DNA from: Laetmonice hystrix
Taxonomy: Eukaryota
Length of the DNA: 64,000 bases
Reading direction: 5' to 3'
Assembly: GCA_965235115.1 (NCBI GenBank)
Contig: OZ249438.1
Location: 28,892,001 to 28,956,000, forward strand
Position 1 is the stretch's first letter. Every line of letters begins with the position of its first letter. Position numbers and translations under genes: made by a program. Shown in pieces: positions 3,410 through 64,000 of this stretch. The notes beneath the pieces were generated by a model. That model saw nothing but the letters and a program-made list of their open reading frames with translations, searched no databases and was not told the DNA's origin.

Positions 3410-3543
3410 CAAGTATCGCATTAGCTACGACTGAATGTTCCTTGATACAACATCAAGTATCGCAGTTAGCTACGACCGAATGTTCCTTGATACAACATCA
3501 AGTATCGCAGTTAGCTACGACCGAATGTTCCTTGATACAACAA
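3410..3543. repeat. 45-bp tandem repeat x3
   Basis: CAAGTATCGCAGTTAGCTACGACCGAATGTTCCTTGATACAACAT. Confidence 0.9.
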
Positions 3544-7734: not shown

Positions 7735-9828
7735 CGTGTTCTGTATGAGTAAAGTCCTGTACAGTCTCCATACCGGGCGGGTTCTGTATGAGTAAAGTCC
7801 TGTACAGTCACCTTACCGGGCGGGTCTGTATGAGTAAAGTCCTGTACAGTCTCCGTACCAGACGGGTTCTGTATGAGTAAAGTCCTGTACAGTCTCCGTA
7901 CCAGGCGGGTCTGTATGAGTAAAGTCCTGTACAGTCTCCGTACCGGACGGGGTCTGTATGAGTAAAGTCCTGTACAGTCTCCGTACCGGACGGGGTCTGT
8001 ATGAGTAAAGTCCTGTACAGTCTCCGTACCGGGCGGGGTCTGTATGAGTAAAGTCCTGTACAGTCTCCGTACCGGGCGGGGTCTGTATGAGTAAAGTCCT
8101 GTACAGTCTCCGTACCGGACGGGTTCTGTAAGAGTAAAGTCCTGTACAGTCTCCGTACCGGACGGGGTCTGTATGAGTAAAGTCCTGTACAGTCTCCGTA
8201 CCAGGCGGGTCTGTATGAGTAAAGTCCTGTACAGTCTCCGTACCGGGCGGGGTCTGTATGAGTAAAGTCCTGTACAGTCTCCGTACCAGGCGGGTCTGTA
8301 TGAGTAAAGTCCTGTACAGTCTCCGTACCAGGCGGGTCTGTATGAGTAAAGTCCTGTACAGTCTCCGTACCGGGCGGGGTCTGTATGAGTAAAGTCCTGT
8401 ACAGTCTCCGTACCGGACGGGTTCTGTATGAGTAAAGTCCTGTACAGTCTCCGTATCGGGCGGGTCTGTATGAGTAAAGTCCTGTATACAGTCTCCGTAC
8501 CGGGCGGGGTCTGTATGAGTAAAGTCCTGTACAGTCTCCGTACCAGGCGGGTCTGTATGAGTAAAGTCCTGTATACAGTCTCCGTATCGGGCGGGTCTGT
8601 ATGAGTAAAGTCCTGTATACAGTCTCCGTACCGGGCGGGGTCTGTATGAGTAAAGTCCCATACACAGTCTCTGTACCGGACGTGTTCTGTATGAGTAAAG
8701 TCCTGTACACAGTCTCCGTACCGGGCGGGGTCTGTATGAGTAAAGTCCTGTACAGTCTCCGTACCGGACGTGTTCTGTATGAGTAAAGTCCTGTACACAG
8801 TCACCTTACCGGGCGGGTCTGTATGAGTAAAGTCCTGTACACAGTCTCCGTACCGGACGGGGTCTGTATGAGTAAAGTCCTGTACACAGTCTCCGTACCG
8901 GACGGGGTCTGTATGAGTAAAGTCCTGTACACAGTCTCCGTACCGGACGGGGTCTGTATGAGTAAAGTCCTGTACACAGTCTCCGTACCGGGCGGGGTCT
9001 GTATGAGTAAAGTCCTGTACAGTCTCCGTACCGGACGTGTTCTGTATGAGTAAAGTCCTGTACACAGTCACCTTACCGGGCGGGTCTGTATGAGTAAAGT
9101 CCTGTACAGTCTCCGTACCGGACGGGTCTGTATGAGTAAAGTCCTGTACATTCTCCGTACAGGACGGGTTCTGTATGAGTAAAGTCCTGTACAGTCTCTG
9201 TACCGGGCGGGTCTGTATGAGTAAAGTCCTGTACAGTCTCCGTACCAGGCGGGTCTGTATGAGTAAAGTCCTGTACAGTCTCCGTACCGGGCGGGGTCTG
9301 TATGAGTAAAGTCCTGTACAGTCTCCGTACCAGGCGGGTCTGTATGAGTAAAGTCCTGTACAGTCTCCGTACCGGGCGGGGTCTGTATGAGTAAAGTCCT
9401 GTACAGTCTCCGTAACAGGCGGGTCTGTATGAGTAAAGTCCTGTACAGTCTCCGTACCGGGCGGGGTCTGTATGAGTAAAGTCCTGTACAGTCTCCGTAC
9501 CAGGCGGGTCTGTATGAGTAAGGTCCTGTACAGTCTCCGTACCGGGCGGGGTCTGTATGAGTAAAGTCCTGCACAGTCTCCGTACCGGACGGGGTCTGTA
9601 TGAGTAAAGTCCTGTACAGTCTCCGTACCGGGCGGGGTCTGTATGAGTAAAGTCCTGTACAGTCCCCGTACCGGACGGGGTCTGTATGAGTAAAGTCCTG
9701 TACAGTCTCCGTACCGGACGGGGTCTGTATGAGTAAAGTCCTGTACAGTCTCCGTACCGGGCGGGGCCTGTATGAGTAAAGCCCTGTACAGTCTCCGTAC
9801 CGGGCGGGGTCTGTATGAATAAAAAGAC
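7735..9828. repeat. 42-45-bp minisatellite, about 48 copies
   Basis: CTGTATGAGTAAAGTCCTGTACAGTCTCCGTACCGGGCGGGGT. Confidence 0.97.
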
Positions 9829-11104
9829 CCGGGTCAGGTTCCAATGTTCACAGATAGAAATTCTACACTTTCCATGCGGGATCTGCGTTCGTTCAGTTCT
9901 TAAAGTGCCACTCGTACCGAGAATAAAGTTACCAAAGGAGACAAACACGTTAAATACTCGCATGGATGTCTCCCAGCATTCAGATCTCTGCTGACAGAGG
10001 AGTCTCATGTGACATTAAAGGAAAATTTACTTGAATATTTAACAATATTACACAAAACGGGACTTCCCGGCGCGCTCGTGCTTTGGCCATAGCGTAACTT
10101 TTAAATCTACATTCTCCTTTTAATTAAATGAAAGCTTTGATCCATTTTTTGTTATTCAAATGTCTCAGGCAAGTACAATCATGTAGTAAGAAAATATACA
10201 TAGAAAAATAAACTTCGAAGAGATGTATGATATTTGATCGTACCAAATTTACCTGTAAACATGTACATTAACGCCATACAAGAGTTAGACCCGAGGGACC
10301 AGAGCCATTCTTGTATTGTTACTTTATAGCAAGAAATCGTTATACCATTTCATACGGTGACTGATGGTTTAGTAAACTAGGGGAGCCGATTGCATATTGG
10401 GCAGTCACATTATGTGTCACGCTATGTGTCACCTGTCACGTTACGTATTACCAATGCGTCACATGCAAGTTAGATGGCGTTCAACAAATTACTTGCGAAG
10501 AATGCTCTGGTATAACCGCTAGATGAGGACGGACTCCTGTACGTGGTACTTTGACACTGTAATCAAGGATGAGATCCACCAAAAATTACGTGAGTGAAGT
10601 CACGTTGAAATATTCTGTCACTCTCAAAACACTGGCTAAGTATCTCTTAGTTATCTGACCAATTAAAATGTACCCCAATCTATAGGAAGTAATTTGCGCT
10701 GCTGCCTTCCATGGAGGAGACTTCATTAGAGGGAGAAGACTTCATTAGATTCTCTGATTGTTAACGGCACAGGCAGTTTAAATGGCTGCGTGTGGTGTCT
10801 CTGCCATTATGCTGCAGTAACTATAGTTATCCTGTTCGTCAGATTAGAGTCACTTTGCATGATAATGTCAGCATTTATTTGCAGGAATATTCCTCGGCTG
10901 ATATGGCTGAGAACTCCTATTGTTCAACTTCCTACGCCTCGTCGTTATCATGAATGGCTGCTAGAAAATAATTAAATGCTGCATTTTGTAGGCATTATGT
11001 AAGTTTTTACCTCATTGTCGCCCTCCGGTGGCAATATTCTCATAACGTCGCTTTTTACATGCGTCTGTCTGAGAGTGCGGCGTTAACAGATGTCAGAAAC
11101 AGTG

Positions 11105-11800
11105 CTCCCCTTCCCTCCCTCCCCTCCCTCCTCCCTCGCCCTCCCTCCCCTCCCCCACCTCCGCCTCCATCTCTTCCCTCCCCTCCCTCCTCCCTCCTCC
11201 CTCGCCCTCCTCTCCCTCCCCTCCCCCACCTCCCTCCCCTCCCTCCTCCCTCGCCCTCCTCTCCCTCCCCTCCCCCGCCTCCCCCTCCCTCCCCCTCCAT
11301 TTCCTCCCTCCCCCCTCCTCTCCCTCCCCTCCCCCACCTCCCCCTCCCTCCATTTCCTCCCCCCCTCCTACCTCGCCCTCCTCTCCCTCCCCCTCCCTCC
11401 CCTCCCTCCCTCGCCCTCCCTCCCTCGCCATCCCTCCCTCGCCATCCCCTCCCTCCCTCGCCATCCCTCCCCTCACCCTACCTCACCCTCCCTCCCCTCG
11501 CCCTCCCCTCCCTCCCCTTCCACTTCCTCACCTACCCCTACCTCCCCCTCCATCTCGTCCCTCCCCTCCCTCCTCCCTCGCCCTTCCCTCCCTCCCCCTC
11601 CCTCCCCTCGCCCTCCTCCCCTCGCCCTCCTTCCCTCGCCCTCCCTCCCCCTCCCCCTCCCTCCCTTCGCCCTCCCTCCCCTCACCCTACCTCACCCTCC
11701 CTCCCCTCGCCCTCCCCTCCCTCCCCTCCACTCCCCTCGCCCTCCCCTCCCTCCCCTCCCTCCCCTCGCCCTCCCCTACCTCCCCCTCCCTCCCTCCTCA
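11105..11800. repeat. Polypyrimidine (CCCT/CCCTCG) low-complexity tract
   Basis: About 700 nt almost entirely C/T on +. Confidence 0.95.
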
Positions 11801-12401
11801 CGCACCAATTTCCTCGGGTATTCTGTATCCGGTAGGAGCTCCCCAAGCCGAGGTGGCGTTGATAGAGTCTACCAGGAACCAACTGTGATGAGAGTCTCAG
11901 CATTCTTTGTTATCTGTTACAAGTAGAGGCAGATGGTATCTCCACATGAACCAGGGTATCTCTTGTGTGGGTCTCCGTGAGGCGAAGTCTTCATTATCTA
12001 TCCTTGGATTGAGGGACACATAGATATAGAGCCTCGCCGAGAGGAGAAACATGTGAGGAAGGACAATAGAGACCCAGGAAGAATGCCCAGTGGAGACAGG
12101 TGGAGAAAGGGAAGGAAAGGGCGAAGGAAACTCCAGGAGAGATAAATGGAAAAATACATTTCCTATTCAAGCTACAGTACTCGACAAGATCATCAACGCC
12201 TCGACCCAATGACAACAGGAAGATTTTTCACAATGTGTGATAATGGTCAAAATATTCCAACTTCGTGAAAAGCTATCAATTTATATATTACCTTTTCTAG
12301 TGATCTGAATATTACATGCAGAGTACATTGTGCCGGTTCTACCATTAAGTGAGATACAATGACATATTCTGACAACCATCAGACTATACAGGAACGTATA
12401 A

Positions 12402-12578
12402 AGGCCTAGACACACATGGGCGTCAAGCGGCAAGCGTCATTTTGAAAATGACGCTCTGAATGCTCAGTATGGTTTTCTATTACACCGTTCACATAACGCT
12501 TCCATACTGAGCATTCAGAGCGTCATTTTCAAAATGATGCTTGACGCTCGACGCTTGCCGCTTGACGTGTCTAGGCCT
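12402..12578. mobile_element. 177-bp fold-back PIF/Harbinger (Tourist-like) MITE
   Basis: AGGCCTAGACAC termini, TAA on both flanks; perfect 35-bp inverted arms 12438-12472 and 12502-12536. Confidence 0.8.
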
Positions 12579-12772
12579 TAAGTGATGTGCCATTATGCAA
12601 AGATCTGGACACATGAACGCTACAACCGCTCACAGTCAAACAATGCCGTTCATCTGGCATTCAGTGACATACAAAGGCATTGTCATGCCAACCGTTCCAG
12701 TGTTAGACACTGTCACTCCAACCGTCCCAGTGTGACACCATCACGTCACCCGTCCCAGTGCTGACACCAGTG

Positions 12773-13188
12773 CTAGGCACTGTCACGTCAACCGTCACGG
12801 TGACAGGCACTGTCACGTCAACCGTCACGGTGACAGGCACTGTTACGCCAACCGTCACGGTGACAGGCACTGTTACACCAACCGTCACGGTGACAGGCAC
12901 GATTACACCAACCGTCACGGTGACAGGCACTGTTACACCAACCGTCACGGTGACAGGCACGGTTACACCAACCGTCACGGTGACAGGCACTGTTACACCA
13001 ACCGTCACGGTGACAGGCACGGTTACACCAACCGTCACGGTGACAGGCACGGTTACACCAACCGTCACGGTGACAGGCACTGTAACACCAACCGTCACGG
13101 TGACAGGCAAGGTTACACCAACCGTCACGGTGACAGGCACGGTTACACCAACCGTCACGGTGACAGGCACTGTTACACCAACCGTAAC
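12773..13188. repeat. 30-bp minisatellite, about 14 copies
   Basis: CAGGCACTGTTACACCAACCGTCACGGTGA; no indels. Confidence 0.95.
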
Positions 13189-13758
13189 GAGGTCATTGAC
13201 GGGATGTTGCCGTATTACAGATTACGAATGAGAATTGAAGCCGTGGAATTCTCGTGCGTGGAATTCTCAGTGCTGCTCACAGACCTCTCCGATAGCAATG
13301 CGTTTTACTTAAGATGACAGAAGCAGTTGATCTCTGACCTGAAGTACTAAAATATTGATCTGTAAGTCGAGGTCCTGCATTCATAATGAATGGCGTTCTG
13401 ACAAGAAAATGGTTGCGCCAGCTGATGTTGACCGAAAGTCGGCATGTCTACACGCGGTCCACAGTAATTCTTGCCCGGTTTCTCATCTATCCGCCGTAAT
13501 AAACACTTTACGGACACGCTTTATCTTTCACGTGATTGTCACCACATTTTACAAGTAGTCCCTTTCACTCCAATAAACACACACTGACTTCGAGTGAGAA
13601 AACGAAATCTTACTGAGTATGGACCGCCAAGAGGTGATACGTCATTCTTGGGACACGACATCCTTCATCAGCTACCGTTTCTTACCACGGATTCAAATCT
13701 ACAATATCATATAGGTTTGCGTGTATCTTTACTTTGCATATTTGTTCTCACAGTATTT

Positions 13759-15141
13759 TAAGCCCAGTGTCTGTCTAACTGGCTTGTGTTCACAATGTCA
13801 TTTCGATGTTAAGCCCAGTGTCTGTCTAACTGGCTTGTGTTCACAATGTCATGTCGATGTTAAGCCCAGTGTCTGTCTAACTGGCTTGTGTTCACAATGT
13901 CATGTCGATGTTAAGCCCAGTGTCTGTCTAACTGGCTTGTTTTCACAATGTTATGTGTACGTTAAGCCCAGTGTCTGTCTAACTGGCTTGTTTTCACAAT
14001 GTTATGTGGACGTTAAGCCCAGTGTCTGTCTAACTGGCTTGTTTTCACAATGTCATGTCGATGTTAAGCCCAGTGTCTGTCTAACTGGCTTGTGTTCACA
14101 ATGTCATGTCGATGTTAAGCCCAGTGTCTGTCTAACTGGCTTGTTTTCACAATGTTATGTGGACGTTAAGCCCAGTGTCTGTCTAACTGGCTTGTTTTCA
14201 CAATGTCATGTCGATGTTAAGCCCAGTGTCTGTCTAACTGGCTTGTTTTCACAATGTTATGTGGACGTTAAGCCCAGTGTCTGTCTAACTGGCTTGTTTT
14301 CACAATGTCATGTCGATGTTAAGCCCAGTGTCTGTCTAACTGGCTTGTTTTCACAATGTCATGTCGATGTTAAGCCCAGTGTCTGTCTAACTGGCTTGTG
14401 TTCACAATGTCATGTCGATGTTAAGCCCAGTGTCTGTCTAACTGGCTTGTTTTCACAATGTTATGTGTACGTTAAGCCCAGTGTCTGTCTAACTGGCTTG
14501 TTTTCACAATGTTATGTCGATGTTAAGCCCAGTGTCTGTCTAACTGGCTTGTTTTCACAATGTTATGTGGACGTTAAGCCCAGTGTCTGTCTAACTGGCT
14601 TGTTTTCACAATGTCATGTCGATGTTAAGCCCAGTGTCTGTCTAACTGGCTTGTTTTCACAATGTCATGTCGATGTTAAGCCCAGTGTCTGTCTAACTGG
14701 CTTGTGTTCACAATGTCATGTCGATGTTAAGCCCAGTGTCTGTCTAACTGGCTTGTTTTCACAATGTTATGTGTACGTTAAGCCCAGTGTCTGTCTAACT
14801 GGCTTGTTTTCACAATGTTATGTCGATGTTAAGCCCAGTGTCTGTCTAACTGGCTTGTTTTCACAATGTTATGTGGACGTTAAGCCCAGTGTCTGTCTAA
14901 CTGGCTTGTTTTCACAATGTTATGTGGACGTTAAGCCCAGTGTCTCTCTAACTGGCTTGTGTTCACAATGTTATGTGTACGTTAAGCCCAGTGTCTGTCT
15001 AACTGGCTTGTTTTCACAATGTTATGTGGACGTTAAGCCCAGTGTCTGTCTAACTGGCTTGTTTTCACAATGTCATGTCGATGTTAAGCCCAGTGTCTGT
15101 CTAACTGGCTTGTTTTCACAATGTCATGTAGATGTTAAGCC
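13759..15141. repeat. 51-bp minisatellite, about 27 copies
   Basis: GTTAAGCCCAGTGTCTGTCTAACTGGCTTGTTTTCACAATGTCATGTCGAT; no indels. Confidence 0.97.
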
Positions 15142-49066: not shown

Positions 49067-49120
49067 GCCAGGTCAGGTCAGGTCAGGTCAGGTCAGGTCA
49101 GGTCGGGCCAGGTCAGGTCA
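49067..49120. repeat. (GGTCA)n microsatellite overlapping the M28B stop codon
   Basis: About 10 units. Confidence 0.9.
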
Positions 49121-49331
49121 GAAGAACCGGTGGACGGGCCGGAGTAGGGCGGCCGCCGTATCGATGAAGTGGGCGATGATGGCCAGCTGGCGCCGGACGG
49201 TGGCCCACTTGCCGGCTGAGTTGACGGTGGCCCGCGAGGCCTCGGCCAGCGAACCGACCAGTCCTGGGAAGGCGGGCCGGGGGTTGGTGTCCGTCGGCCG
49301 GTCATGGGATACCGGCGAGAAGAGAACGTGC
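49118..49331 (-). CDS. M28B gene last coding exon: [10 protein letters not shown]...AFPGLVGSL...[29 protein letters not shown]
   Basis: tttctatcgacag acceptor, 214 nt, phase 2 start, ends in TGA; matches HVIYAP...FPG...W..V.RQ of GCPII. Confidence 0.93.
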
Positions 49332-52300
49332 CTGTCGATAGAAACAGTATACTGTGATCCCAACACTAGCATCAAGGGTGATTACACGGGAGGTGATTAC
49401 ACGGGAGGTGATTACACACGGGAGGTGATTACACGGGAGGTGATTACACGAGAGGTGATTACACACGGGAGGTGATTACACGGGAGGTGATTACACGGGA
49501 GGAGATTACACACGGGAGGAGATTACACACGGGAGGTGATTACACGGGAGGTGATTACACACGGGAGGTGATTACACGGGAGGTGATTACACGAGAGGTG
49601 ATTACACACGGGAGGTGATTACACGGGAGGTGATTACACGAGAGGTGATTACACACGGGAGGTGATTACACGGGAGGTGATTACACGAGAGGTGATTACA
49701 CACGGGAGGTGATTACACGGGAGGTGATTACACGGGAGGAGATTACACGGGAGGTGATTACACGAGAGGTCAGTACAGGGAGGTGATTACACGGGAGGTG
49801 ATTACACGGGAGGTGATTACACGGGAGGTGATTACACACGGGAGGTGATTACACGAGAGGTCAGTACAGGGAGGTCAGTACACGGGAGGTGATTACACGG
49901 GAGGTGATTACACGAGAGGTGATTACACACGGGAGGTGATTACACGAGAGGTCAGTACAGGGAGGTCAGTACACGGGAGGTGATTACACGGGAGGTGATT
50001 ACACGAGAGGTCAGTACAGGGAGGTGATTACACGGGAGGTGATTACACGGGAGGTGATTACACACGGGAGGTGATTACACGAGAGGTCAGTACAGGGAGG
50101 TCAGTACACGGGAGGTGATTACACGGGAGGTGATTACACGGGAGGTGATTACACACGGGAGGTGATTACACGAGAGGTCAGTACAGGGAGGTCAGTACAC
50201 GGGAGGTGATTACACGGGAGGTGATTACACGAGAGGTCAGTACAGGGAGGTGATTACACGGGAGGTGATTACACGGGAGGTGATTACACACGGGAGGTGA
50301 TTACACGGGAGGTGATTACACGGGAGGTGATTACACGGGGGGTGATTACACGGGAGGTGATTACACGGGAGGTGATTACACACGGGAGGTGATTACACGG
50401 AAGGTGATTACACACGGGAGGTGATTACACGGGAGGTGATTACACGGGAGGTCAGTACCTCGGTTACAAGGAGGGAAACATGACTCTGGGAGGGTGTGTC
50501 CAGCAAGCCTCGGTTACAGGGAGGGAACACGGAACCATGGCTCTGGGAGGGTGTGTCCAGCAGGCCTCGGTTACAGGGAGAGAACACGGAAACATGGCTC
50601 TGGGAGGGTGTGTTCAGCAGGCCTCGGTTACAGGGAGGGAACACGGAAACATGGCTCTGGGAGGGTGTGTCCGGCAGGCCTCGGTTACAGGGAGAGAACA
50701 CGGAAACATGGCTCTGGGAGGGTGTGTTCAGCAGGCCTCGGTTACAGGGAGGGAACACGGAAACATGGCTCTGGGAGAGTGTGTCCAGCAGGGCTCGGTT
50801 ACAGGGAGGGAACACGGAAACATGGCTCTGGGAGGGTGTGTCCAGCAGGCCTCGGTTACAGGGAGGGAACACGGAAACATGGTTCTGGGAGAGTGTGTCC
50901 AGCAGGTCTCGGTTACAGGGAGGGAACACGGAACCATGGCTCTGGGAGGGTGTGTCCAGCAGGCCTCGGTTACAGGGAGAGAACACGGAAACATGGCTGT
51001 GGGAGGGTGTGTCCAGCAGGCCTCGGTTACAGGGAGGGAACACGGAACCATGGCTCTGGGAGGGTGTGTCCAGCAGGCCTCGGTTACAGGGAGAGAACAC
51101 GGAAACATGGCTCTGGGAGGGTGTGTCCAGCAGGCCTCGGTTACAGGGAGGGAACACGGAAACATGGCTCTAGGAGGGTGTGTTCAGCAGGCCTCGGTTA
51201 CAGGGAGGGAACACGGAAACATGGCTCTGGGAGGGTGTGTCCGGCAGCCCTCGGTTACAGGGAGGGAACACGGAAACATGGCTCTGGGAGGGTGTGTCCA
51301 TGCATGCAGCAGGTCTCGGTTACAGGGAGGGAACACGGAAACATGGCTCTGGGAGGGTGTGTTCAGCGGACTCGTGTTTTGGAGACCAGTCGAGTCCTAA
51401 AAATTACTCTCAGATATAGTTTTTGTCTTAAACCATCAGCCGCCCCCAGGGAGGACGGGGGAGGGTGGGGAGGCGAGCCGATGGAGAGGGTGTGGCTGGA
51501 ATCCTCGTTAAAGTTATGATCCCGACCGTGTAACAGTCCCGGGTATAGTGAGCGGACTGCGGTGGCGGCGGCGCCCTCTGTAGTCGATGTTTGCAGACAC
51601 AACACGCGTTATCAGAGCGCCACGTGGCGCGGTCGTATCCCACAATAAATACCGATAGCAGAGACAGAGTCAGCAGGCGGGATCACCCACAGTCTCCGCT
51701 AGTATCCTACAATACCGATAGCAGAGACAGAGTCAGCAGGCCGGATCACCCATATATAGTCTCCGCTAGTATCCCACCATACCGATAGCAGAGACAGAGT
51801 CAGCCGGCGGGATCATCCACAGTCTCCGCTATCCCACAATACCGATAGCAGAGACAGAGTCAGCCGGCGGGATCACCCACAGTCTCCGCTATAGTATCCC
51901 ACAATACCGATAGCAGAGACAGAGTCAGCAGGCGGGATCACCCACAGTCTCCGCTAGTATCCCACAATAACCGATAGCAGAGACAGAGTCAGCAGGCGGG
52001 ATCACCCACAGTCTCCGCTAGTATCCCACAATAACCGATAGCAGAGACAGAGTCAGCAGGCGGGATCACCCTCAGTCTCCGCTAGTATCCCACAATACTG
52101 ATAGCAGAGACAGAGTCAGCAGGCGGGACCACCCACAGTCTCCGCTAGTATCCCACAATACCGATAGCAGAGACAGAGTCAGCAGGCCGGATCACCCACA
52201 GTCTCCGCTATAGTATCCTACAATACTGATAGCAGAGACAGAGTCAGCCGGCGGGATCACCCACAGTCTCCGCTAGTATCCCACAATACCGATAGTAGAG

Positions 52301-55300
52301 ACAGAGTCAGCAGGCGGGATCACCCACAGTCTCCGCTAGTATCCCACAATACCGATAGCAGAGACAGAGTCAGCAGGCGGGATCACCCACAGTCTCCGCT
52401 AGTATCCCACCATACCGATAGCAGAGACAGAGTCAGCAGGCGGGATCACCCACAGTCTCCGCTAGTATCCCACAATACAGACAGAGTCAGCAGGCGGGAC
52501 CACCCACAGTCTCCGCTACTCTCTGCTACTAGTACATTCTGTATAATTAACAACTGATATTTAGATAACCAAGCCTATAATGGCTGTGTTGAAACGTTTA
52601 TTCCGAACCCCGATTCTAGAAATAACTATAGCTATAGACTATAGGCCTAGAGCTACTATATTCTCCCCAGGAAGATTTAGAATTAACGATTTCGAAAAAT
52701 CCGCCATGGTTTCATTGATAAAAAGGATTATTCGCACCCTAACATAGATACAACTTTGTGAAAGTTCTGATTTTTTCCAACCAAAAAGCCAGTTGCAATA
52801 CCCGTCTGCACGGCGGACGGTTATTCGCTCTAGGTGTGAATGTGTTTAGAGTTAGGGCTGCGGAGTACTGTGGGTCTCCCAAGAAAAACACAGCGCAGCC
52901 CCCACAGGAGGTTACCAGGCCCCTATCAACTGGCGGGCGTGTCTCCAGAAGCAATAACTACCTCTTATTAGGAAATAAAGGTGTGGCGACCAGCTTCGGC
53001 CAGGCTCGGATGACATTTCTGGTCTGTGCCAATGTCTGCCTCACTTTGGATCAGAATATTGGCTCTTCACCTTTTTACATAGTATCGAGAACCCAAGCAG
53101 TAACCACCGCGCCAGAAATATTACATACAACGTCTGATAACATGCAATGCATGAGGAAGGAAAACTAAATCCTGTATATCATGGAAGATATATCTCAGAG
53201 ATACGTATGAATGGGTCCTATAGAGAACGTATCCTCCTGTTCGGAGAGATAAGATGCACATTTTGAACGGTCCATGCAGTCCCAGCCCAGCCAGCCGGTG
53301 AGACTGGCAGTCCCAGCCCAGCCAGCCGGTGAGACTGACAGTCTCAGCCCAGCCAGCCGGTGAGACTGACAGTCCCAGCCCAGCCAGTCGGTGAGACTAA
53401 CAGTCTCAGCCCAGCCAGCCGGTGAGACTGACAGTCTCAGCCCAGCCAGCCGGTGAGACTGACAGTCCCAGCCCAGCCAGTCGGTGAGACTGACAGTCCC
53501 AGCCCAGCCAGCCGGTGAGACTGACAGTCCCAGCCCAGCCAGCCGGTGAGACTGGCAGTCCCAGCCCAGCCAGTCGGTGAGACTGACAGTCCCAGCCCAG
53601 CCAGTCGGTGAGACTGACAGTCCCAGCCCAGCCAGCCGGTGAGACTGGCAGTCCCAGCCCAGCCAGCCGGTGAGACTAACAGTCTCAGCCCAGCCAGCCG
53701 GTGAGACTGACAGTCTCAGCCCAGCCAGCCGGTGAGACTGACAGTCCCAGCCCAGCCAGTCGGTGAGACTGACAGTCCCAGCCCAGCCAGTCGGTGAGAC
53801 TGACAGTCCCAGCCCAGCCAGCCGGTGAGACTGGCAGTCCCAGCCCAGCCAGCCGGTGAGACTAACAGTCTCAGCCCAGCCAGCCGGTGAGACTGACAGT
53901 CTCAGCCCAGCCAGCCGGTGAGACTGACAGTCCCAGCCCAGCCAGCCGGTGAGACTGACAGTCCCAGCCCAGCCAGCCGGTGAGACTGACAGTCTCAGCC
54001 CAGCCAGCCGGTGAGACTGACAGTCCCAGCCCAGCCAGCCGGTGAGACTGACAGTACGAGCCCAGCCAGCCGGTGAGACTGACAGTCCCAGGCCAGCCAG
54101 TCGGTGAGACTGACAGTCCTAGCCCAGCCAGCCGGTGAGACTGACAGTCCCAGCCCAGCCAGCCGGTGAGACTGACAGTCCCAGCCAAGCCAGCCGGTGA
54201 GACTGACAGTCTCAGCCCAGCCAGCCGGTGAGACTGACAGTCTCAGCCCAGCCAGCCGGTAGACTGACAGTCCCAGCTCAGCCAGCCGGTGAGACTGACA
54301 GTCCCAGCCCAGCCAGTCGGTGAGACTGACAGTCCTAGCCCAGCCAGCCGGTGAGACTGACAAAGACTTGAGGAGTGGGAGGTCTCAGAGACCATCCATT
54401 CTGGCCCGTATCTCAGAACGGTAAATGAGTACATGTGTTTTAGGGAGGCCGGGGTCAGACCTCTTGTAAGGATAGGTTGAGGGAGGGCCGGGGGGGGGGG
54501 TCTGCACCCTCACACTGAACCCAGTGAGAGGTACGGGGACTGACTGATACTCCGCCAAACTCACAGAGCAACCCCTGAACAACACGTATAACAACAATAT
54601 CAGGGTCTTCAAACAACTGCCAGCTTTCTTTACGGCAAGTTTCAGGAAATAAAGTCAATGTATGGATTTGTGGAGATCACTTAAGGTGTGTCCCTGCCGC
54701 TAGTTTCGAAATTATAATTCTGTAAAATAAATATAATGTTGGAAAATGAATAATATTCATTACTGTCCTCTAATTACTTTCTTGTGGAATAAAACAATAT
54801 GGAAATCTCTTCCTCGTGATTTATGTGAAAAAAATACAAATATCACTTTTAAAATATGCCTATAACAAGAGAAGATCGCATTGTTATAACACAATGGTAT
54901 CTAAATACTCTGCCATACATAATCGTTAAATAACAAACCGAATCTGTCACAGGAAACTAAAGTGACGCATAAAGTCACGCTCTGGTGAAAATTTATGAGG
55001 TGTGACGAGCAACATGCCCAATAATGGAACTGCTGATAACTAAATAGTGGCCAATTAGTTCCACATGGAGCTTTTGGTGACACAAAGGAAATAGCAACTA
55101 GAGCGTTACCTGTCGAAGGGCATGCCGGGAATGCCACTGGGATCGATGAACGCTCTGTCTAGACTCATGAAGACATCATTCACCAAGCGTACCGCCAGGG
55201 GGCTGTCGACATGGTACGATAATCAATTAACATTAGGATGGTTGTCATTGGAAGAAAAATCATTATTCATGTCAGAATAACAATTAATGTCCTCTCGAGA

Positions 55301-58300
55301 TTCTGTTCTCTAATCACGACTTTTTAATCATAATGTTAGTTCTGGATATCTTTTCAATAATTCCTGCTCCTTTACTGTTCCTACTTACTCGGATATATTG
55401 ATTCTGGAGACCCGTTGAGAGAATGCTTCTGCTGTTGTCCGGAATGTTGATATTGCACTGCTAATATACTCTGAAAAACCAAATCAGGGTTTCCTGCAGG
55501 CCATTTTTGGGGGAAACTCTCCCCATTATTCAGCTACTCCCCCAAAAAAACATTTCCAAGGGGAAATATTTTGCATTACTCTCCCCCCCCCCCCCAACTC
55601 GCACCATTCCCCCCAAAAGTCGAAAGTCTCCAGGAAACCCTGCAAATGTATAGTTTTCATATGTCCAGACTCATGTTCCGTGTCCGAAAGACGAACACAT
55701 TATAATGCACATTACCGTAATTGCCCTACATGTAGCTGTTAATGTTGCAGGTAGGCTACATAAGATGACGGTGAACTGTAAGATCTAGATCAGACCCACC
55801 CACATACCTAGACCATGGGTTAATCCGCGCGCCTTGAGGATCTGGCCATGATCAGTGTCGAACCGTTTGAACGCCTGCTCCACCACCTCCACGTAATCAA
55901 CGACATTGAACGGAAGTAGGACGTCCTCCGCCAGGCGGCGCGACAGCTCGGCCGTATACTGCGCTATGGCGACGTGATACTGTCAGAACATCATAAGTTT
56001 ATACTTTATCGTTTAGATACTTAGTTGACTGTGGAATCGGGCCCTCAATAATTAATACAAGAATGATGCTCTAATTCTACATTTCTGACTGGACAAATCA
56101 TGAAATATATCTGTGTTAGATGTGGTGTGCTCGAGGTTGATGCTTACCGTAAAGTTACGATCTATGAAGTTTTCTACCATATGGTATGTGTCATACTGGG
56201 TGTGATATAAAGGGTAGAGGGTGCGACCTCTGTGCTGTAAACATATAACATACATTATGATCGGTGTCATTTAATGTGACTCTGCCACTTTTAAAACGTC
56301 GGCCTCTTCACATTTTAGCCTAATTAAATGTCTAGGCCTATAGAAGACACGTGCGTGATTTACACAAATGCATTCTGACGCACCCATCAATAATCTTTCT
56401 TGTTGAAAGAAGAACCAAAATGTTTAATCGAATGGAGGTTAACAATAATGTTGTGGTTCTTGTTGGCAAATCGTTGTTTTTACCTGTTTTGCGATGAAGC
56501 CGACATCGAGAGCGGAAATTCCGAGCATGGATACGAACGGCCCCAAGCCTGAGCTGAGATCCGGAGCGTCCAGTCTGAAGGAGACAGACAATAGATTAAG
56601 GCACGGGATGGCGCAGAAAAAACACAACCCCCTGGGCGGTTTATTTGTGTACTGTTGAAGGAATCATGGAAGCAACGAGAGCAAACAAACTGCGTTTCCG
56701 CCACGCGTCACGTGTTTGCCTGCTGCTGCTATCTGAAGGTGAACAAAAAACCCGCCGCACGCCGCGAGCCAAGCTGGCAATACGACCAGAGGTCTGCGGT
56801 CTGCTCATCGTGTCCTTATAGCCAAACAATTACGGATCTTGGCGCTCAGAATATCGCCCACGTACAAACTAGAGTACTTGGATGGTGAGGTAATCTCAAT
56901 AAGACCAATCATTTCGAAAAAAAGTACAAAAGGAATTTAAGTTTACACAAGTAGAAAGGAACACGCACGCACATTGCCTTTTTCATGGTCGATTTGTCCT
57001 CCTTCAGCGTCAGCCCTCGTTCAATCCACGTATCGTAAAGTCTGGCGCGACCATGAGACCGCTCAGACACGTCCGGATTTAAGACCTGAATCAAAATTCA
57101 GTTTAGAAGTAAGTGGATAATCTCTGTAAAAATGCAATAAAGCAGTAAAAAAAACCTCATGTTCAGTTTTTTCTTTACATAATGTGTTGCTATCTTTAAT
57201 TTGTATAACTATAAGCAATTTAAAGAGGAGAGGGCAAGGTACCTGTTTGGCGACGTTGAACATGAGACGTTGTACCATGGGCATGCCTCGACCCCGTAAG
57301 GTATAGTTTCCTGTCAAAGAACAATCAGTGACAGTGTAATATTGCACATGATTATAGTATTGAGAAACTTTAACCTGTCAAAGAACAATCAGTGACAGTG
57401 TAATATTGCACATGATTATAGTATTGAGAAACTTTAACCTGTCAAAGAACAAGTCAGTGACAGTGTAATATTGCACATGATTATAGTATTGAGAAACTTT
57501 AACCTGTCAAAGAACAAGTCAGTGACAGTGTAATATTGCACATGATTATATAAATAGTATTGGCAAACTTTAACCTGTGAAAAACAATCAGTCACAGTGT
57601 AATATTGCATATGATTACAGTATTGAGAAACTTTAACCGGGTAATATTTATTGCACATGATTATAGTCTTGAGAAACTTTAACCAGGTAATATTTATTGT
57701 ACATGATTATAGTATTGAGAAACTTTAACCGGGTAATATTGCACATGATTATATCTCTGGGAAACTTTAACGGGGTAATATTGCACATGATTATAGTATT
57801 GAGAAACTTTAACCAGGTATCCCTGTCACACTCGAAGAATGAATGTACATGGACGCCTTGTTCAAAACGGCCAAAATGGGGTTGTCGTATATTCATGCAT
57901 GAGAAGGCAAATTACAGAGACTCGCAAACAAAGCTATAACTGCATTGCCGCCACAATGAGGTTAGGATGCAATAGCAATGAACGCGCGATATATTATAAT
58001 GGGGTAACTTGAGGAGGATCGCCCTTCACAGCGAGTTGTGTTTCCATAATGTACACTTTTCTACTTGACCTGCCTAGAATATACGGATCAATGCATTGGA
58101 ATGCCAGCTTTTGTTGTCCAACAGAAGGCTACTACATACACACGTTGGGTTAGTATAGGTTATATAATTTCGTATATAGCTTAGATTTTTAAGGCATGTT
58201 AACTACACAAACCTTGTACTGCCACATCAAGGCTAATAGCGGCCACCGCCCGGTCGACAAGTAGGCGACCATATTGCTGTGGTAAAGAAACCAGAGGAAG

Positions 58301-60637
58301 GAAATATAGAGGAAGGGACATCTAAAATTCTATTTCTCCTACTGTTATAGCATTTTTACAACCTCACAATTAAAAAATATATAGCGCCTATTACTGATCC
58401 CTTACAAAAACCAAATGGTTGATTGGAGGAAACATGAAAATGTCGTCCTGACTAGAGTTACCTCGACCCATTCGGTTGACCCGACTTGTCCGTACACGCC
58501 AGCAGCCCAGCTACAAAACAGTATGCTTCGTCGTGGTCGCCACCCTACGGCCAAGACAGAAGTACGAGATAAATAGATTCTAACAGTCTGGTACATGCCT
58601 AAGTAAATCTTCAGCTGACTGGATATTACACAATCATGTACCCTCCTAGTCAGTTCGCCTTGTTTGCGGAGCTGTAATAATAAAGTCGCATATTGTAGTT
58701 TAACAATAAAGTTATTCACCATTCTTTTTCAAGTTTCCCATAACTCGGGATATCTCCATCATAATAGCCGTTCCGGATCCGGAACTGGCCGCGCCATACG
58801 CCCAGGCATCATGATGGCTACTCAGGACAACGTAACGGTCTGTAAGAGATGGTAACCAAATATTTCATGAACAAAATATACTAGATCTATGCTCTATGAT
58901 ACTCAGATAGATAGTCACGAGGTGACAAACTAGTCGCAGAAGAACTTTAAGCGATCAGAGAATGATGCGATTATTTTAATCGTGCCTTGACACTAACCTG
59001 GTTCTTGGGAACCGTGGATAACTCCAACAACATTGTGAACTGTGGCGTTTTCTGACGTAGTTGAAACCTTTAGCTGAACTTTCCTGTTAAAAGAACACTT
59101 TCTATGTTTAATACCATAAAGTTCTCTTTTTATGAATGAAATATATCTCAAATAAATATGTACACCCACACTCAGACTCATACATACATGCACATATTAA
59201 CTTAGAGAAGTGTGTGCATACAAATATCATGTTATAATCGCACTCACATGTCAGGCTGATGGAAGCCAGGACCAAGTCGATAAGTCACCGGTAGGTGTCC
59301 TTGCCAGTCTTCCGGCGCCTTGGGCCCTACCATTAGTCTAAGAGAGTTGTTCAGTCAGGCGACTCAGTATTCCGTTGAGCACTAAATACTCCATGTACGA
59401 TCAAACAGGACAACTCCAGAGTAGTCTTACTGGATTACCTTTTATCATGCCACGTTTATCTCGTCATGTACAAATCTTGATGACAGCACCGAGAAGTTGC
59501 CACTACCGCAATTCACTAGGTCATGTCTACAGCATTCCCAGCCTAGATTCTTATGCCAGATTTGTAAAAAAAACATATTAAAAAAGGTTTGAGGTTATCG
59601 TTTATTGTGATCCCTAGAATACCATGAGCTGATTCATAGACTTACTGTAGCAGGTGCATAACGTCATCATAGCCGATGGGCAGGACTGGGATGGTTGGCA
59701 GGTCGGTGCTGGCTGGAGGCAGGCGGTAGGCACTCACTGTCCAACACACATTATAATGATATACGGATGGGCAACGGTGTTACATAATAATCACCACACA
59801 ATATAATGATATACGGATGGACAATGGGCATGACAAGGTTTCAAATTCAGTACTTGTTTTGGTGTACGCCTTATATAATTGACCTATAGGATTATATACA
59901 CTGCAGTGTCTCAGTAAAAACTGAGAGGTCCATAACTTGTTCATACTCGTTCGAAAAAGTTCTTCCAGAAAAGATCTATCTCGAGAATTTACAAAAAATA
60001 ATGATAATAAAAAAATAAATAATTATAGTTAATCTGTGATGGTTACCAGTGGATGGATATCCCGGAGTGAGAGGGTCGCCATGATTCATCTTCAGCGTCC
60101 CGCTCTCGGCTACATTTCCCGGCATCCACCACGAGTGAGGATACGTCGACGTACTTCCGGTGACTACATCCGGGTCTGTGAAGAGAATGAGCCCCGCGCC
60201 GCCGAACCTCTCGGTGTTCTCTGCCTGAGGTATTAAACAAGATGTCTAAATCCTCGTCCTCGGCGTGAGAACGGCACTTGATGTCAAGTGGGACACTTCA
60301 CTCAGACATAACTGATGTCCTTACGCTAGCTCCAGGTAGCTGCGCATTGTTCTAAAGTTGATTACGTCACATAAGCCTACTTAAATACCAGTTAAATGAT
60401 AGCTTTGTACGTAACTATTTAAGAGCAAGGTGCCCTCTACGAAAAATAAATGGGGAACAGGGGCACGGCACAGATGTGACTGTAAAAAACAGAAGCCAGG
60501 CGTGCGCTTACCTTGGAGGCCTGCAGGATCTTTCCATATCGAGCGATGCATATTTTGCCTCTGATGTCGATATTTGCCTTGTTGCTCAGCCACAGGAAAT
60601 CTTCGACAGTTGCATAGTTGACGTAGACAAGGCTGCC
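49118..60637 (-). CDS. Glutamate carboxypeptidase II / NAALADase / TfR-family (peptidase M28B) protein, predicted catalytically inactive; 16 exons found, 5' part not located
   Basis: 16 GT-AG exons join in frame: 60512-60637, 60047-60224, 59646-59736, 59248-59337, 58998-59083, 58720-58839, 58462-58544, 58213-58276, 57243-57310, 56973-57085, 56484-56574, 56148-56234, 55808-55979, 55389-55470, 55110-55202, 49118-49331. Family motifs: [69 protein letters not shown]. Confidence 0.95.
49378..50458. repeat. 15-17-bp minisatellite (GATTACACGGGAGGT)
   Basis: About 70 copies in the last M28B intron. Confidence 0.97.
50459..51366. repeat. 57-bp minisatellite, about 16 copies
   Basis: CCTCGGTTACAGGGAGGGAACACGGAAACATGGCTCTGGGAGGGTGTGTCCAGCAGG. 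Confidence 0.96.
51647..52517. repeat. About 63-bp minisatellite, about 14 copies
   Basis: ATACCGATAGCAGAGACAGAGTCAGCAGGCGGGATCACCCACAGTCTCCGCTAGTATCCCACA. Confidence 0.95.
53278..54361. repeat. 31-bp minisatellite, about 35 copies
   Basis: CAGTCCCAGCCCAGCCAGCCGGTGAGACTGA. Confidence 0.97.
55110..55202 (-). CDS. M28B gene exon (TfR-like dimerisation domain): [30 protein letters not shown]
   Basis: gacag acceptor, CAG|gtaacg donor, 93 nt, phase 2-2. Confidence 0.94.
55389..55470 (-). CDS. M28B gene exon: [26 protein letters not shown]
   Basis: tttttcag acceptor, gtaagt donor, 82 nt, phase 1-2. Confidence 0.9.
55485..55642. mobile_element. 158-bp MITE, hAT-like termini, 5-bp TSD
   Basis: 12-bp perfect TIR CAGGGTTTCCTG; CAAAT on both flanks; internal poly-C. 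Confidence 0.85.
55808..55979 (-). CDS. M28B gene exon: [29 protein letters not shown]...RGLTHGL
   Basis: gacag acceptor, gtatgt donor, 172 nt, phase 0-1. Confidence 0.94.
56148..56234 (-). CDS. M28B gene exon: [29 protein letters not shown]
   Basis: tttacag acceptor, gtaagc donor, 87 nt, phase 0-0. Confidence 0.94.
56484..56574 (-). CDS. M28B gene exon: [30 protein letters not shown]
   Basis: ccttcag acceptor, CAG|gtaaaa donor, 91 nt, phase 2-0. Confidence 0.9.
56973..57085 (-). CDS. M28B gene exon: [37 protein letters not shown]
   Basis: ttcag acceptor, gtgcgt donor, 113 nt, phase 0-2. Confidence 0.88.
57243..57310 (-). CDS. M28B gene exon: [23 protein letters not shown]
   Basis: gacag acceptor, CAG|gtacct donor, 68 nt, phase 1-0; GNYTLR identical to GCPII as recalled. 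Confidence 0.92.
57311..57815. repeat. 64-bp tandem repeat containing the splice acceptor, decaying into shorter units
   Basis: CTGTCAAAGAACAATCAGTGACAGTGTAATATTGCACATGATTATAGTATTGAGAAACTTTAAC. Confidence 0.93.
58213..58276 (-). CDS. M28B gene exon: [21 protein letters not shown]
   Basis: cacag acceptor, AAG|gtttgt donor, 64 nt, phase 0-1. Confidence 0.9.
58462..58544 (-). CDS. M28B gene exon: [28 protein letters not shown]
   Basis: cgtag acceptor, GAG|gtaact donor, 83 nt, phase 1-0. Confidence 0.95.
58720..58839 (-). CDS. M28B gene exon: [40 protein letters not shown]
   Basis: tacag acceptor, gtgaat donor, 120 nt, phase 1-1. Confidence 0.93.
58998..59083 (-). CDS. M28B gene exon: [28 protein letters not shown]
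   Basis: aacag acceptor, gttagt donor, 86 nt, phase 2-1. Confidence 0.92.
59248..59337 (-). CDS. M28B gene exon: [29 protein letters not shown]
   Basis: cttag acceptor, gtgagt donor, 90 nt, phase 2-2. Confidence 0.92.
59646..59736 (-). CDS. M28B gene exon: [29 protein letters not shown]
   Basis: gacag acceptor, gtaagt donor, 91 nt, phase 1-2; matches LPSIPVHPIGY of GCPII. Confidence 0.92.
60047..60224 (-). CDS. M28B gene exon: [18 protein letters not shown]...[11 protein letters not shown]
   Basis: ctcag acceptor, gtaacc donor, 178 nt, phase 0-1. Confidence 0.93.
60512..60637 (-). CDS. M28B gene exon (PA domain): [14 protein letters not shown]...[12 protein letters not shown]
   Basis: tgtag acceptor, AAG|gtaagc donor, 126 nt, phase 0-0. 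Confidence 0.93.
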
Positions 60638-63453
60638 CTACAAATCGACCGAAGAAACCCGGTTTTATTCCGTGATTGCCACACTGCAGAACTGTTGGGT
60701 CAATATTGGTAATGTGTGGCAGCGTTTCCAATACACACCAAGATGACAAGGCGATTTGGGGTTAAATGTCGGCCTCACACTTGAACTGCTCGATAAGGTA
60801 CATAGACTTTTTCTTCATGACCCAATAAGTGTAAGGTTTATGTTTTACGAAGTAATCTATTCTTATCTTCCACATCAAAATATCAACAATATTTGAAAAG
60901 GAACGTCAAGGGCATTAATGCGAACATGTTCTCGAGACATCGGCAAATAGAACCAAAAGGTATAGGCCTACACTGCTGAAATATATTTACGTAGGCCTAC
61001 AAGGATGGTGGTAATGGAATATGACCAAGTTGAAAAAGAATGTCTGTTGGAACGGCCAGACCATACAGGCCGATAATCTGATATCATTAGCCTGAATTTG
61101 ATGAAAGTTATGTAATTTTATGAATGAAATAGTTGTAAAAACCAAGAACGTCAAACCAACATGGATAGGCTGGGGCTGATTGGTTGATTTATACTGATTG
61201 TCAACAGATCTGCACGTGATGGCACGCTAGTAGATAAATACAACTCCGCAAAACTGGCCTCAATTTCCAGTTAATTGAAGTCGAATGTAGATCTAGCCAT
61301 CAGGTGATGAAAATACGTGAGGCGCGTACAGGGCGCCAGCGAGGTTCTCTACCGTAGGTGGACCTCGCTGAGTGTTGATTCCAAGCCCACCATGTGGTTA
61401 CAATCGGCGCCCCACCCGGAAGCCCCACCCCCAGCCCCGCCCTCCGCGGAGGTCGAACGGTTTGAAGTCGGCCGACACCGGTGTGCGTACACCGTCAACG
61501 TGAGACTACGTCACGTCATGACTGCTGAGGTAGCTAATCGGCGACGACCATCTATGGTCCAGGTGGCGCCACTGGAGCTCGCAGCGTCCAGCAGCCGACC
61601 TGAGCAGTTAGTGAATGAGACAAGGCACTCGACACGAGAACCGACGTAAAACGCCCTTTAATGTGGTTCACCTACATGCCTATCAATAATAAAGTCAACA
61701 TGGATGCAGTCATATGATTAGAACTCTGTTTGAAACCAGTTGAGAACCATCTGGAATCATGGCTCGCGCAAGTTACGAGTCTGCCTAGTGTGCTCAACTC
61801 CGCCACTCCATGCAACAGGTCATATTCAAAAACTCACAAATCCGTGCTGATCAAGTGCCCTTCGATGTTTCTTATAGATCAGTTGTGGATGCTGGGTTAG
61901 TAAGTCTACATTTCTTTCCGCTTCTAAAACTCTAGATAAGAGCGGCGGCGTATAGGAGTCGGCGTCCTTATTTAAACATGATGGGCCGACATGATATGGT
62001 CGTCAGAACTGTCATCGCTAGGTCGGAATGTAGGTAAGAATGATCGGCCTGCCTGCGTACACCTGCGCTAGAGTACTCCATAGGATGGAGACTCCAGGTG
62101 GTCTCCAGTGTGGAGGGATGGGGTCGGGTAACGACCTCCAGGCCAGGCGAGGTCGCTAGAACGCCGCCGGGCTACCTTCAAAGGTCGGTGAAGACACGTG
62201 CCCGGAGGGTCTCTCCCGCCAACCCGCGACCACATAAACCCGGGACCCGCCTCCAGCCCTGATTGCCGCTATCTTACTGACAATTAATCTAATAAATATA
62301 AACACCTGAGGAAGGCCTGTTGGCAGAAGATTTCACATAGTATTAGTGGCAGCTATATTTTACTGCCACTGGTGGGAAATCACTGGCGGGTAGACCTCTA
62401 TGTTGGCACATGCAGGTTTTCGTTTCTCTTTCTTCATTTTGTGGAGTTTTGTCTGATCCCATGGAGAACCATTTAAATGGTGAATGTTTTGTTTTCTGAG
62501 TATCTCTACTCTACAGGAGAAGGCGAGCGAGAACGTATTCTGAACCCAACTTTTAACCGTTTATCAGTATAAAAAAAAGTTCTAATCAAGTCGTACATTC
62601 CAACAGACATCGGTCCCGAGACCTCGACCTTATTCCAATGTCAATCGTACGCCTGGCCACGAGTGTATCTCGTACTTGAAGCAGCCTGACTCCATGACAA
62701 ACACCCAACAGCTCCCTCAGCCCCCCAACCACCCGCAAACCCGAGTTCCCAACACATCTGGTTCGGGCCGTACCCAGAATTCTGCTGCTATAGAATATGC
62801 ATGCTGCTCCTATTATTGACAGCTGGGGGTCCCGGCCCTCTCCATGACTTCCACCAGGACCTGCTCCATCACTCGAGTTAATTTCTCTCAGGTGTGCCAG
62901 TATTAAAGAGCTAACGTTAGCATCAGGTCGTCTCAAGTGCTGTTACCCACGCTACATTGTCCTTAATGCACTCCACACTCTATTTACGTTGACAGGTCGA
63001 TAACCTGACGGCGTACCCGTGCTAGGATAAGTTTTGTTTACCGGTCAGTCCAACACACCCTTTGCAACTACTGCACAGATTCTGAACATCTCTGTATTCA
63101 GGGGGTCTACACCCACTGGCGATGGGCCCTATACATACAAATGGCAAGCCAAGGGAGAGAGAGTTGCATGTAAAAGAACCCTTGCCACTTATCAAAATGA
63201 GTATATATAGTGTGTTGAATTGTTTTCTTTATCGCCAACACAGGGCAAGGAAGTGCAGAACATTATGGGAAAACGGATATATGGAATTGTATGCCAGGAG
63301 TAGGAGTCCGGGAGGTCCAATATGGTTGTCATGCATAGATCTATAGCCTAATGGGAGAAGATCTAGGACGTGCTTTGATTGTATTTTAGCTATGTGCCTT
63401 GTCCTTTCTTCAACTGAAAAAAGGGCGAATGTTAGACCAGGAAAGTCGCTCTA

Positions 63454-63653
63454 AGGGCAGGCTCACACTGAGAATTTCCCCGGGGTAATACCCGGGTCAC
63501 TGGTGGTGAGTTGTATGTAAAGATACCAGCTCACCACCACTGACCCATGTATTACGCCGGGCTAGTGGTGGTGATCTGTATGTGACGATACCAGCTTGCA
63601 CCACCACTCTCCCGGGTATTACCCGGGGTAAAACCTCAGTATGAACCTGCCCT
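63454..63653. mobile_element. 200-bp PIF/Harbinger-like MITE with two internal hairpins
   Basis: About 43-bp TIR (AGGGCAGG.TCA.ACTGAG...GGGTAATACCCGGG, 6 mismatches); flanks TAA/TGA if the termini are taken as GGGC. Confidence 0.7.
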
Positions 63654-64000
63654 GATAGATCGAGTGTAAAATCGCCTCGGCTGGTGGTAGGTCACGTGAT
63701 CCATGGGGCGCGTGTCCTCCACTAGGGATGACGCTGGCCAACACGTGCCGAGCTACACGTCACACAACACAGACCGGCCAACCCTCCCCACGCCTCTCGG
63801 CGGTGAATGGTCTAACTGGATTGAAATAAAGAAATATCCCCTGTCACGCCGCCTGCTTGTAGTAGATCATGTAAACCATGTCGTGTTTCCAACCAACCAT
63901 GTGTCATGTTTACTTTGAAACCTTGTCTCAGTATATTTTACCTCGTATCTAAGGCACCATCTGTATATGGAAGGCAACTACATTGTGGTTATGCCTGCAC

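Follow-up and report, generated by a model that had tools for sequence, protein, structure and literature searches.

The question raised by the locus described here is whether a peptidase-like gene that has lost part of its active site still codes for an enzyme, is decaying, or has been kept for another purpose. It is a minus-strand gene on a chromosome of the eukaryote Laetmonice hystrix (assembly GCA_965235115.1, 627 Mb; contig OZ249438.1, here C3 of genome G000) and was studied in a window of 64,000 nucleotides, G000:C3:28892001-28956000. It belongs to MEROPS peptidase family M28B, the family of human GCPII. The transferrin receptor (TfR), built on a peptidase scaffold, makes this family the textbook example of such re-use; the change happened long ago, and no intermediate forms survive. 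Known non-catalytic members of the family are TfR1/2 and, by prediction, NAALADL2, and pseudoenzymes are common in general. An earlier note, made from the letters of the window, had described the gene as a GCPII homologue turned pseudo-peptidase with TfR-like substitutions. Taken as a whole, the evidence is best explained by a recently inactivated, still constrained GCPII-family membrane protein in a non-catalytic role, and this is probably what the gene encodes.

Gene model and active site

Stop-free segments and splice signals define 16 minus-strand exons in the window (49118-60637) with one open frame of 585 codons. Two 5' exons lie outside the window. Exon 2 was found with a family hidden Markov model at window-equivalent 64310-64577 (G000:C3:28956310-28956577), and exon 1 by a scan for hydrophobic stretches at window-equivalent 76249-76601 (G000:C3:28968249-28968601). 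The full model has 18 exons and 792 amino acids and describes a type II membrane M28B protein; its 792 codons contain no stop, all 17 introns are GT-AG, and the 34 splice sites are canonical. The type II topology is seen in exon 1, which reads MAVSRLAFVVLVLVILVIGFAVGFLAGYL and is conserved in the counterpart of an orthologue from another species (described below), MDLSRVAFGVLIVVVLLVGFVIGFLSGFL. Exon 1 codes for a very short tail and a single transmembrane helix, followed by a stalk up to ..IRNYL, and joins exon 2 in phase at R-DLTSGPRLAGT. The cytoplasmic tail is MAVSR, or MIDFTAMAVSR from an upstream ATG (5-11 residues). The stalk (L014:4251-4500) contains a Gly/Gln/His/Asp-rich insert, ..AGAGGGEGG..GGDQQQDQQHYGNYGHDHDRD.., at a place where the orthologue has an acidic stalk and a KDGD motif.

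To assign residues, single exons were aligned with phmmer to PDB chains of human GCPII, and the conversion of numbering was verified on H377, D387, E424 and E425. That the gene is an M28B homologue of the GCPII type, as proposed beforehand, was borne out by the exon alignments to GCPII, GCPIII and NAALADL1 chains and by two Pfam domains: Peptidase_M28 (PF04389) on the D387 exon, with 25.2 bits (cut-off 21.3), and TFR_dimer (PF04253) on the last exon (27.1 bits, at cut-off) and on the preceding one (24 bits). For the two apical exons, the alignments to GCPII cover residues 172-213 and about 215-274, at 34-35 bits; taken singly, these exons gave no match to the Pfam PA domain. The window gene was absent from a six-frame PF04253 scan of its own genome at E<=0.001, and its dimer-domain part has thus diverged.

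Three of the five zinc ligands are kept, namely H377, D453 (in AISLD) and H553 (in YPLYH), whereas D387 is replaced by Ser and E425 by Val. Gly has taken the place of the proton-shuttle residue E424, in an exon whose top PDB match is chain 3bxm, an E424A mutant. D379 and the Ca2+ ligands T269, Y272, E433 and E436 are retained, and the retention of D453, Y552 and H553 was read directly from the translation. Each catalytic residue singled out in the earlier note (D387, E424 and E425 replaced; H377, D453 and Y552/H553 kept) was found as described there. In the S1' pocket only Y552 is kept; the other residues are changed (R210Q, N257T, K699R, and Y700P with a four-residue insert). The exon with G518/N519 and R534/R536 is too diverged to have matched any PDB chain at E<=10, and judged by eye N519, D520, R534 and R536 are replaced. 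The pocket changes listed before at R210, N257, K699/Y700 and in the G518/N519-R534/R536 region are therefore real, with the qualification that position 257 is non-diagnostic (Ser in the C. elegans orthologues and Haliotis) and that K699R is a conservative change.

In GCPII, E424 is essential as the proton shuttle, and D387, H377, D453, E425 and H553 are the zinc ligands (PMC10794815); an E-to-M mutant at the E424-equivalent residue serves as an inactive control (PMC9768917). The zinc ligands and E424 are conserved in C. elegans and trematode orthologues (PMC10794815, PMC9768917). The full H-D-D-E-E-D-Y-H signature is present in 135 of 144 other full-length invertebrate family members, none of which carries the triple change D387S, E424G and E425V of the window protein.

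The window protein would be an M28B type II membrane glycoprotein with three ectodomain parts, protease-like, apical and helical. Its two-zinc centre is dismantled, with Ser for the bridging D387 and Val for E425, and Gly stands for the proton shuttle; the glutamate-recognising S1' residues (R210Q, Y700P, N257T) and the S1 arginine patch are replaced, and the substrate funnel has been rebuilt. From these residues we infer that the protein would be unable to hydrolyse peptides as GCPII does. A hydrolase with an altered substrate range, working with one metal bound by H377 and D453 (plus S387) or in some other way, would agree with the retention of H377, D379, D453, Y552 and H553 and with a pocket that is remodelled, not randomly degraded. 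It is a quite improbable outcome, as Gly stands at the residue reported to be essential (PMC10794815) and mutated in inactive controls (PMC9768917), the neighbouring ligand is Val, and the exon sequences offer no obvious acidic substitute nearby.

The invertebrate GCPII/NAALAD2-like enzymes (Haliotis P0108, C. elegans, trematode) share with the window protein the type II topology, the protease-like, apical and TFR_dimer domains, the Ca2+ site and H377, D453, Y552 and H553. They differ from it at the sites where D387S, E424G and E425V would remove the second zinc site and the general base, and where R210Q, Y700P and the loss of the arginine patch would remove substrate recognition; the described invertebrate orthologues keep these residues.

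Relatives of the gene and origin of the loss

A search of other assemblies with exon 2 returned three exon-sized fragments, P0283, P0284 and P0285, which score 149, 114 and 65 bits against the window gene and at most 56 bits against any paralogue of its own genome. P0284 lies on a 3.1-Mb ENA contig of another invertebrate (assembly ERZ25767047), and a walk of 38 kb along this contig, made by look-up of small called open reading frames near locus ends, recovered a gene with the same 18-exon layout. This sister gene is intact. It reads NHRDAW..GAVDPFS, SWGAEEYG, INMDMAVSG, HPLYH, IFRGSK and IDIRYMYD, has Y700, and keeps every catalytic and most substrate residues. The motif RATVNSA.KW and the N-terminus M.(L/V)SR.AF.VL are specific to the lineage and common to both genes. 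In the other species a reverse-transcriptase reading frame (RVT_1, 404 amino acids, L018:1793-3007) lies within the orthologous gene, in the intron that separates exons 4 and 5.

The window protein is 51% identical to the intact sister, 42% to Haliotis P0108 and 41-42% to the canonical mollusc enzymes; the nearest named proteins are mollusc 'NAALAD2-like' enzymes. In a maximum-likelihood tree of 46 sequences, which included neither TfR nor NAALADL2, the window gene and the sister are joined at 100/100 and are placed among canonical mollusc, nemertean and priapulid enzymes, with the own-genome paralogues elsewhere. The end branch of the window gene is about 2.4 times that of the sister (0.95 and 0.39). 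Support for deep nodes of the tree is poor, and the placement of the long rows par2, par3 and par4 changed between runs; no claim made here rests on them. A search with Haliotis P0108 returned mainly molluscs, along with echinoderms, nemerteans and a priapulid; none of these sequences was close to the window gene. The E424 exon retrieved a single unrelated canonical fragment (P0286), and a one-exon representative search gave mostly exon-sized fragments that are nearer to the canonical paralogue.

These results show the window gene to be an orthologue of a canonical, catalytically intact spiralian GCPII-like enzyme. Since the sister is intact and the pair is nested in the canonical clade, the loss of the active site is recent, being confined to the window lineage and later than its split from the ERZ25767047 lineage, and it is independent of TfR and, on indirect evidence, of NAALADL2. 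Catalysis would have been lost after that split, with evolution about 2.4 times faster since. The conversion had been described beforehand as independent or ancient; independence is upheld by the intact sister and the canonical clade, and an ancient date is contradicted by the 100/100 pairing with a gene that keeps the catalytic residues.

At about four positions the window protein has come to carry the TfR1 letter: I386A, P388S, E424G and a Val located three residues past G427. The D387 exon scores 39.6 bits against NAALADL1, 32.3 against GCPII and 26.3 against TfR1, and the E424 exon 30.7-31.5 against GCPII and 29.5 against TfR1; the apical exons and the last exon gave no TfR1 match (three of the five exons tested). 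GCPII thus exceeds TfR1 in every exon tested, and when the exon scores are added up, GCPII and NAALADL1 lie far ahead of it. Two segments had been likened to TfR1, and their similarity (SWAA..YG..GSTEWVE and DAW.YGA...SGTA.MME) is largely the ordinary invertebrate GCPII-like consensus, which reads SW.AEEYG..GS.EWVE and DAWVYGA.DPSSGTA.MME. The TfR-like substitutions of the earlier note can accordingly be kept for the four or so convergent positions and are otherwise invertebrate consensus, with TfR1 never the best-scoring match. A YxxF endocytosis motif before the transmembrane helix, which had been suggested as a feature to look for, was not found once the 5' exons had been recovered, the tail of 5-11 residues having no tyrosine. 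Judged by these alignments, the protein resembles TfR only superficially.

With TfR1/2 the window protein shares the M28B scaffold with no working zinc site, Gly at the E424 position and small residues at 386-388; it is non-orthologous to them, and its catalytic loss would be independent and much younger. TfR1 has Gln at the 377 position, where the window protein keeps its His, and a tail of about 60 residues with YTRF, which is lacking in the short tail described here. NAALADL2 is comparable as a family member that is presumed inactive, and orthology to it is disfavoured indirectly, by the intact sister at 100/100 and by the identity to the canonical mollusc enzymes. If the gene were an invertebrate orthologue of NAALADL2 or of the transferrin receptors, the loss would be ancient. 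The few letters of TfR1 type where the metal site used to be, GAA.SG.GTA and SWxAG, could be read in this sense. The sister with its intact active site, the position of the pair, the exon scores and the short tail make such descent extremely improbable, as does the presence of a separate TfR-like dead member on C10 of the same genome.

Four other M28B genes were found in the genome, at C3:10.18 Mb, C3:26.48 Mb, C30:5.79 Mb and C10:25.6 Mb. Both paralogues on C3 have the full catalytic signature. An intron of the one at 10.18 Mb (G000:C3:10192750-10194750, L006) contains a minisatellite of about 50 units of about 37 nt, each of which translates in frame. In the C30 paralogue (G000:C30:5794400-5803700, loci L007-L008), the motif HWDAQEQN has Q at E424 and keeps E425; an apical-domain exon piece of this gene is tandemly triplicated (ISC.DSIVIVRYGNIYRGEKVS, three copies). 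The C10 paralogue (G000:C10:25619400-25632500, loci L011-L012) reads GANRNSFGLG, with H377 and D379 lost, and SWGGGDYG, compared with SWSAGDFG in TfR1; the exon with SWGGGDYG scores 43.2 bits against TfR1 and 37.4 against GCPII, and no YPLYH exon was found in the locus. It is possibly a NAALADL2/TfR-type member. Like the window gene it is an M28B gene with a dead active site; it is far more diverged (end branch 2.8), and the loss in the window gene would be separate and later.

Constraint on the gene and layout of the locus

Columns of the alignment were ranked by conservation across 26 canonical clade members, 121 of them being at least 95% conserved. The window gene keeps 79% of these columns and the sister 91%, while in the most variable columns the two agree in 31%. 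The window gene has changed in 21% of the invariant columns versus 69-83% of the variable ones. Private losses at conserved columns number 18 in the window gene and three in the sister; those of the window gene include R210, G211, D387, P388, E424, E425 and N451 and, by our own mapping to GCPII, D520 and Y700. As far as the alignment tells, the pattern is one of degeneration focused on the active site with the fold apparently preserved, not of uniform decay. Between the window gene and the sister, the nonsynonymous divergence (dN) is 0.41 and the synonymous divergence (dS) about 4, and 30% of fourfold sites have an identical third base; the synonymous sites are saturated, so that dN/dS is uninformative for the window branch.

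Polymorphism was taken from DNA contigs of one sample compared with the assembly. Seven of the 40 single-nucleotide polymorphisms (SNPs) listed are exonic, six synonymous and one nonsynonymous. With 369 synonymous and 1173 nonsynonymous sites, the listed SNPs give a ratio of nonsynonymous to synonymous polymorphism (pN/pS) of about 0.05, and the probability of at most one nonsynonymous change in seven under neutrality is about 0.001. All 12 listed insertions or deletions (indels) are intronic, exons making up 27% of the stretch. Contigs of the second haplotype span the catalytic exons, including exon 9, with no difference there among those listed. About 1% of positions differ between sample and assembly at window positions 55050-60700, where the three runs partly disagree, which suggests that the sampled individual is highly heterozygous. 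Taken together, the counts and the conserved columns support purifying selection on the reading frame, the fold-critical residues and the Ca2+ site. The earlier statement that the frame is intact across 16 exons and that the gene appears maintained agrees with the 585 open codons, the 6:1 ratio of SNPs and the 79% of conserved columns kept.

Several points weigh against a maintained protein. The splice junctions are predicted from DNA, the three public runs that hold the stretch being DNA-like contigs of one sample. Beyond those listed there are 11 SNPs and seven indels; by the per-contig counts about three of these SNPs are possibly exonic, and pN/pS could be up to about 0.2 if all three were nonsynonymous. 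The faster branch (2.4-fold) and the loss of 18 invariant residues are also compatible with constraint relaxed toward decay, and the integrity of the fold is deduced from conservation only. The closest relative, P0283 (assembly ENA ERZ26222911), is 76% identical in exon 2, and its contig stops before the catalytic exons.

A freshly inactivated enzyme gene could be drifting to a pseudogene, with no new function and with its frame open for lack of time. The long end branch, the excess of private losses, the fact that the gene is known from DNA runs alone, and the two paralogues with a full catalytic signature, which could cover the enzymatic role, would all fit such drift. Set against it are the listed exon SNPs and intronic indels, the lower rate of change in invariant columns, and 34 canonical splice sites with 792 open codons; moreover, an unselected frame would hardly be expected to stay open over a branch of about 0.95 changes per site. 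Drift to a pseudogene is therefore unlikely, and a constrained protein in a non-catalytic role is preferred.

The exons in the window and the last intron are summarized in Table 1. A candidate exon at 54950-55039 and candidates at 57997-58202 were dropped because they have no phase-compatible acceptor and the true sequence (including NYTLRG..) sits in other exons. For exon 15 the donor 55807 was preferred to an in-phase alternative at 55813, as the orthologue exon extends equally far. The 5' exons were also sought in 60638-64000 by tblastn with 15 family proteins, with no convincing result; a weak match at 61880-61999 (E 0.78) was dropped after the real exons had been located past the window end.

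Table 1. Exons of the M28B gene inside the window and its last intron (window positions; residues in GCPII numbering)
Feature	Position	Strand	Remarks
Exon 3 of 18 (first inside window)	60512..60637	-	Apical/PA domain; GSLVYVNY...; ILQASK, R210->Q; orthologue IFRGSK
Exon 4	60047..60224	-	Apical domain; N257->T; Ca2+ ligands T269, Y272 kept
Exon 5	59646..59736	-	VSAYRLPP...; GTAAGT donor at 59645; 60% identity to orthologue exon
Exon 6	59248..59337	-	Matched in orthologue
Exon 7	58998..59083	-	Matched in orthologue
Exon 8	58720..58839	-	Second part of protease-like domain starts; H377, D379 kept; bridging zinc ligand D387->S; P388->S; orthologue NHRDAWVYGAVDPFS
Exon 9	58462..58544	-	SWAAGVYG; proton shuttle E424->G, zinc ligand E425->V; Ca2+ ligands E433, E436 kept; orthologue SWGAEEYG
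Exon 10	58213..58276	-	Zinc ligand D453 kept; N451->S; two synonymous heterozygous SNPs
Exon 11	57243..57310	-	Acceptor adjoins 65-nt tandem array
Exon 12	56973..57085	-	L536P, sole nonsynonymous SNP among those listed
Exon 13	56484..56574	-	G518/N519/D520 and R534/R536 region, strongly diverged; arginine patch lost; orthologue LGSGSDF...IDIRYMYD
Exon 14	56148..56234	-	Y552 and zinc ligand H553 kept
Exon 15	55808..55979	-	Helical C-terminal domain begins; donor 55807; two synonymous SNPs
Exon 16	55389..55470	-	Orthologue has FLANAVTNFQDASGQFMNRITSVNTK
Exon 17	55110..55202	-	Pfam TFR_dimer, 24 bits
Exon 18 (with stop codon 49118-49120)	49118..49331	-	...HRFF; K699->R, Y700->P, four-residue insert; TFR_dimer, 27.1 bits; RATVNSA.KW in common with orthologue
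Last intron (5.8 kb)	49332..55109	-	Mostly four minisatellite arrays

The four minisatellites of the last intron consist of 70 copies of 15 nt (49377-50452), 16 of 57 nt (50474-51374), 14 of 63 nt (51648-52518) and 35 of 31 nt (53277-54362). Over 49377-54362 they produce long spurious reading frames on both strands. Arrays of 65-nt and 46-nt units occupy 57310-57819, starting exactly at the exon 11 acceptor; each unit has an acceptor-like end, ..ttgacag, and the units might act as alternative acceptors. Over the intron stretch at 55428-55805 the contig depth, summed across the DNA runs, is 1,100-14,000, as opposed to about 50 elsewhere, and loose ends are numerous; the stretch is an interspersed repeat of high copy number.

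Possible role and meaning for the family

Two roles may be considered for the constrained, non-catalytic protein. It could be a surface protein that binds a ligand in the former substrate funnel, or it could act as the silent dimer partner of an active paralogue of the same genome, which is plausible because M28B proteins act as dimers. It is unlikely that the dead ectodomain now serves as a receptor or ligand-binding protein in a new role, which would be a second, independent and young receptor re-use of the GCPII scaffold, in a spiralian worm. If it were true, it would parallel the origin of the vertebrate TfR, and the TfR-like replacements would be a common structural route after the loss of zinc.

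As a non-catalytic M28B member, of a kind already known from TfR1/2 and NAALADL2, the window gene is a new case that arose independently and is unusually young. Its importance is moderate: pseudoenzymes are common, the family already yields them, and the role proposed here is drawn from sequence. Automatic names such as 'NAALAD2-like' can hide non-enzymes of this sort. The young pair, a dead gene and an intact sister in another species with identical exon layout, lets the order of changes be read, and its comparison indicates that the metal ligands, the general base and the substrate pocket were lost while the Ca2+ site and the fold residues were kept.

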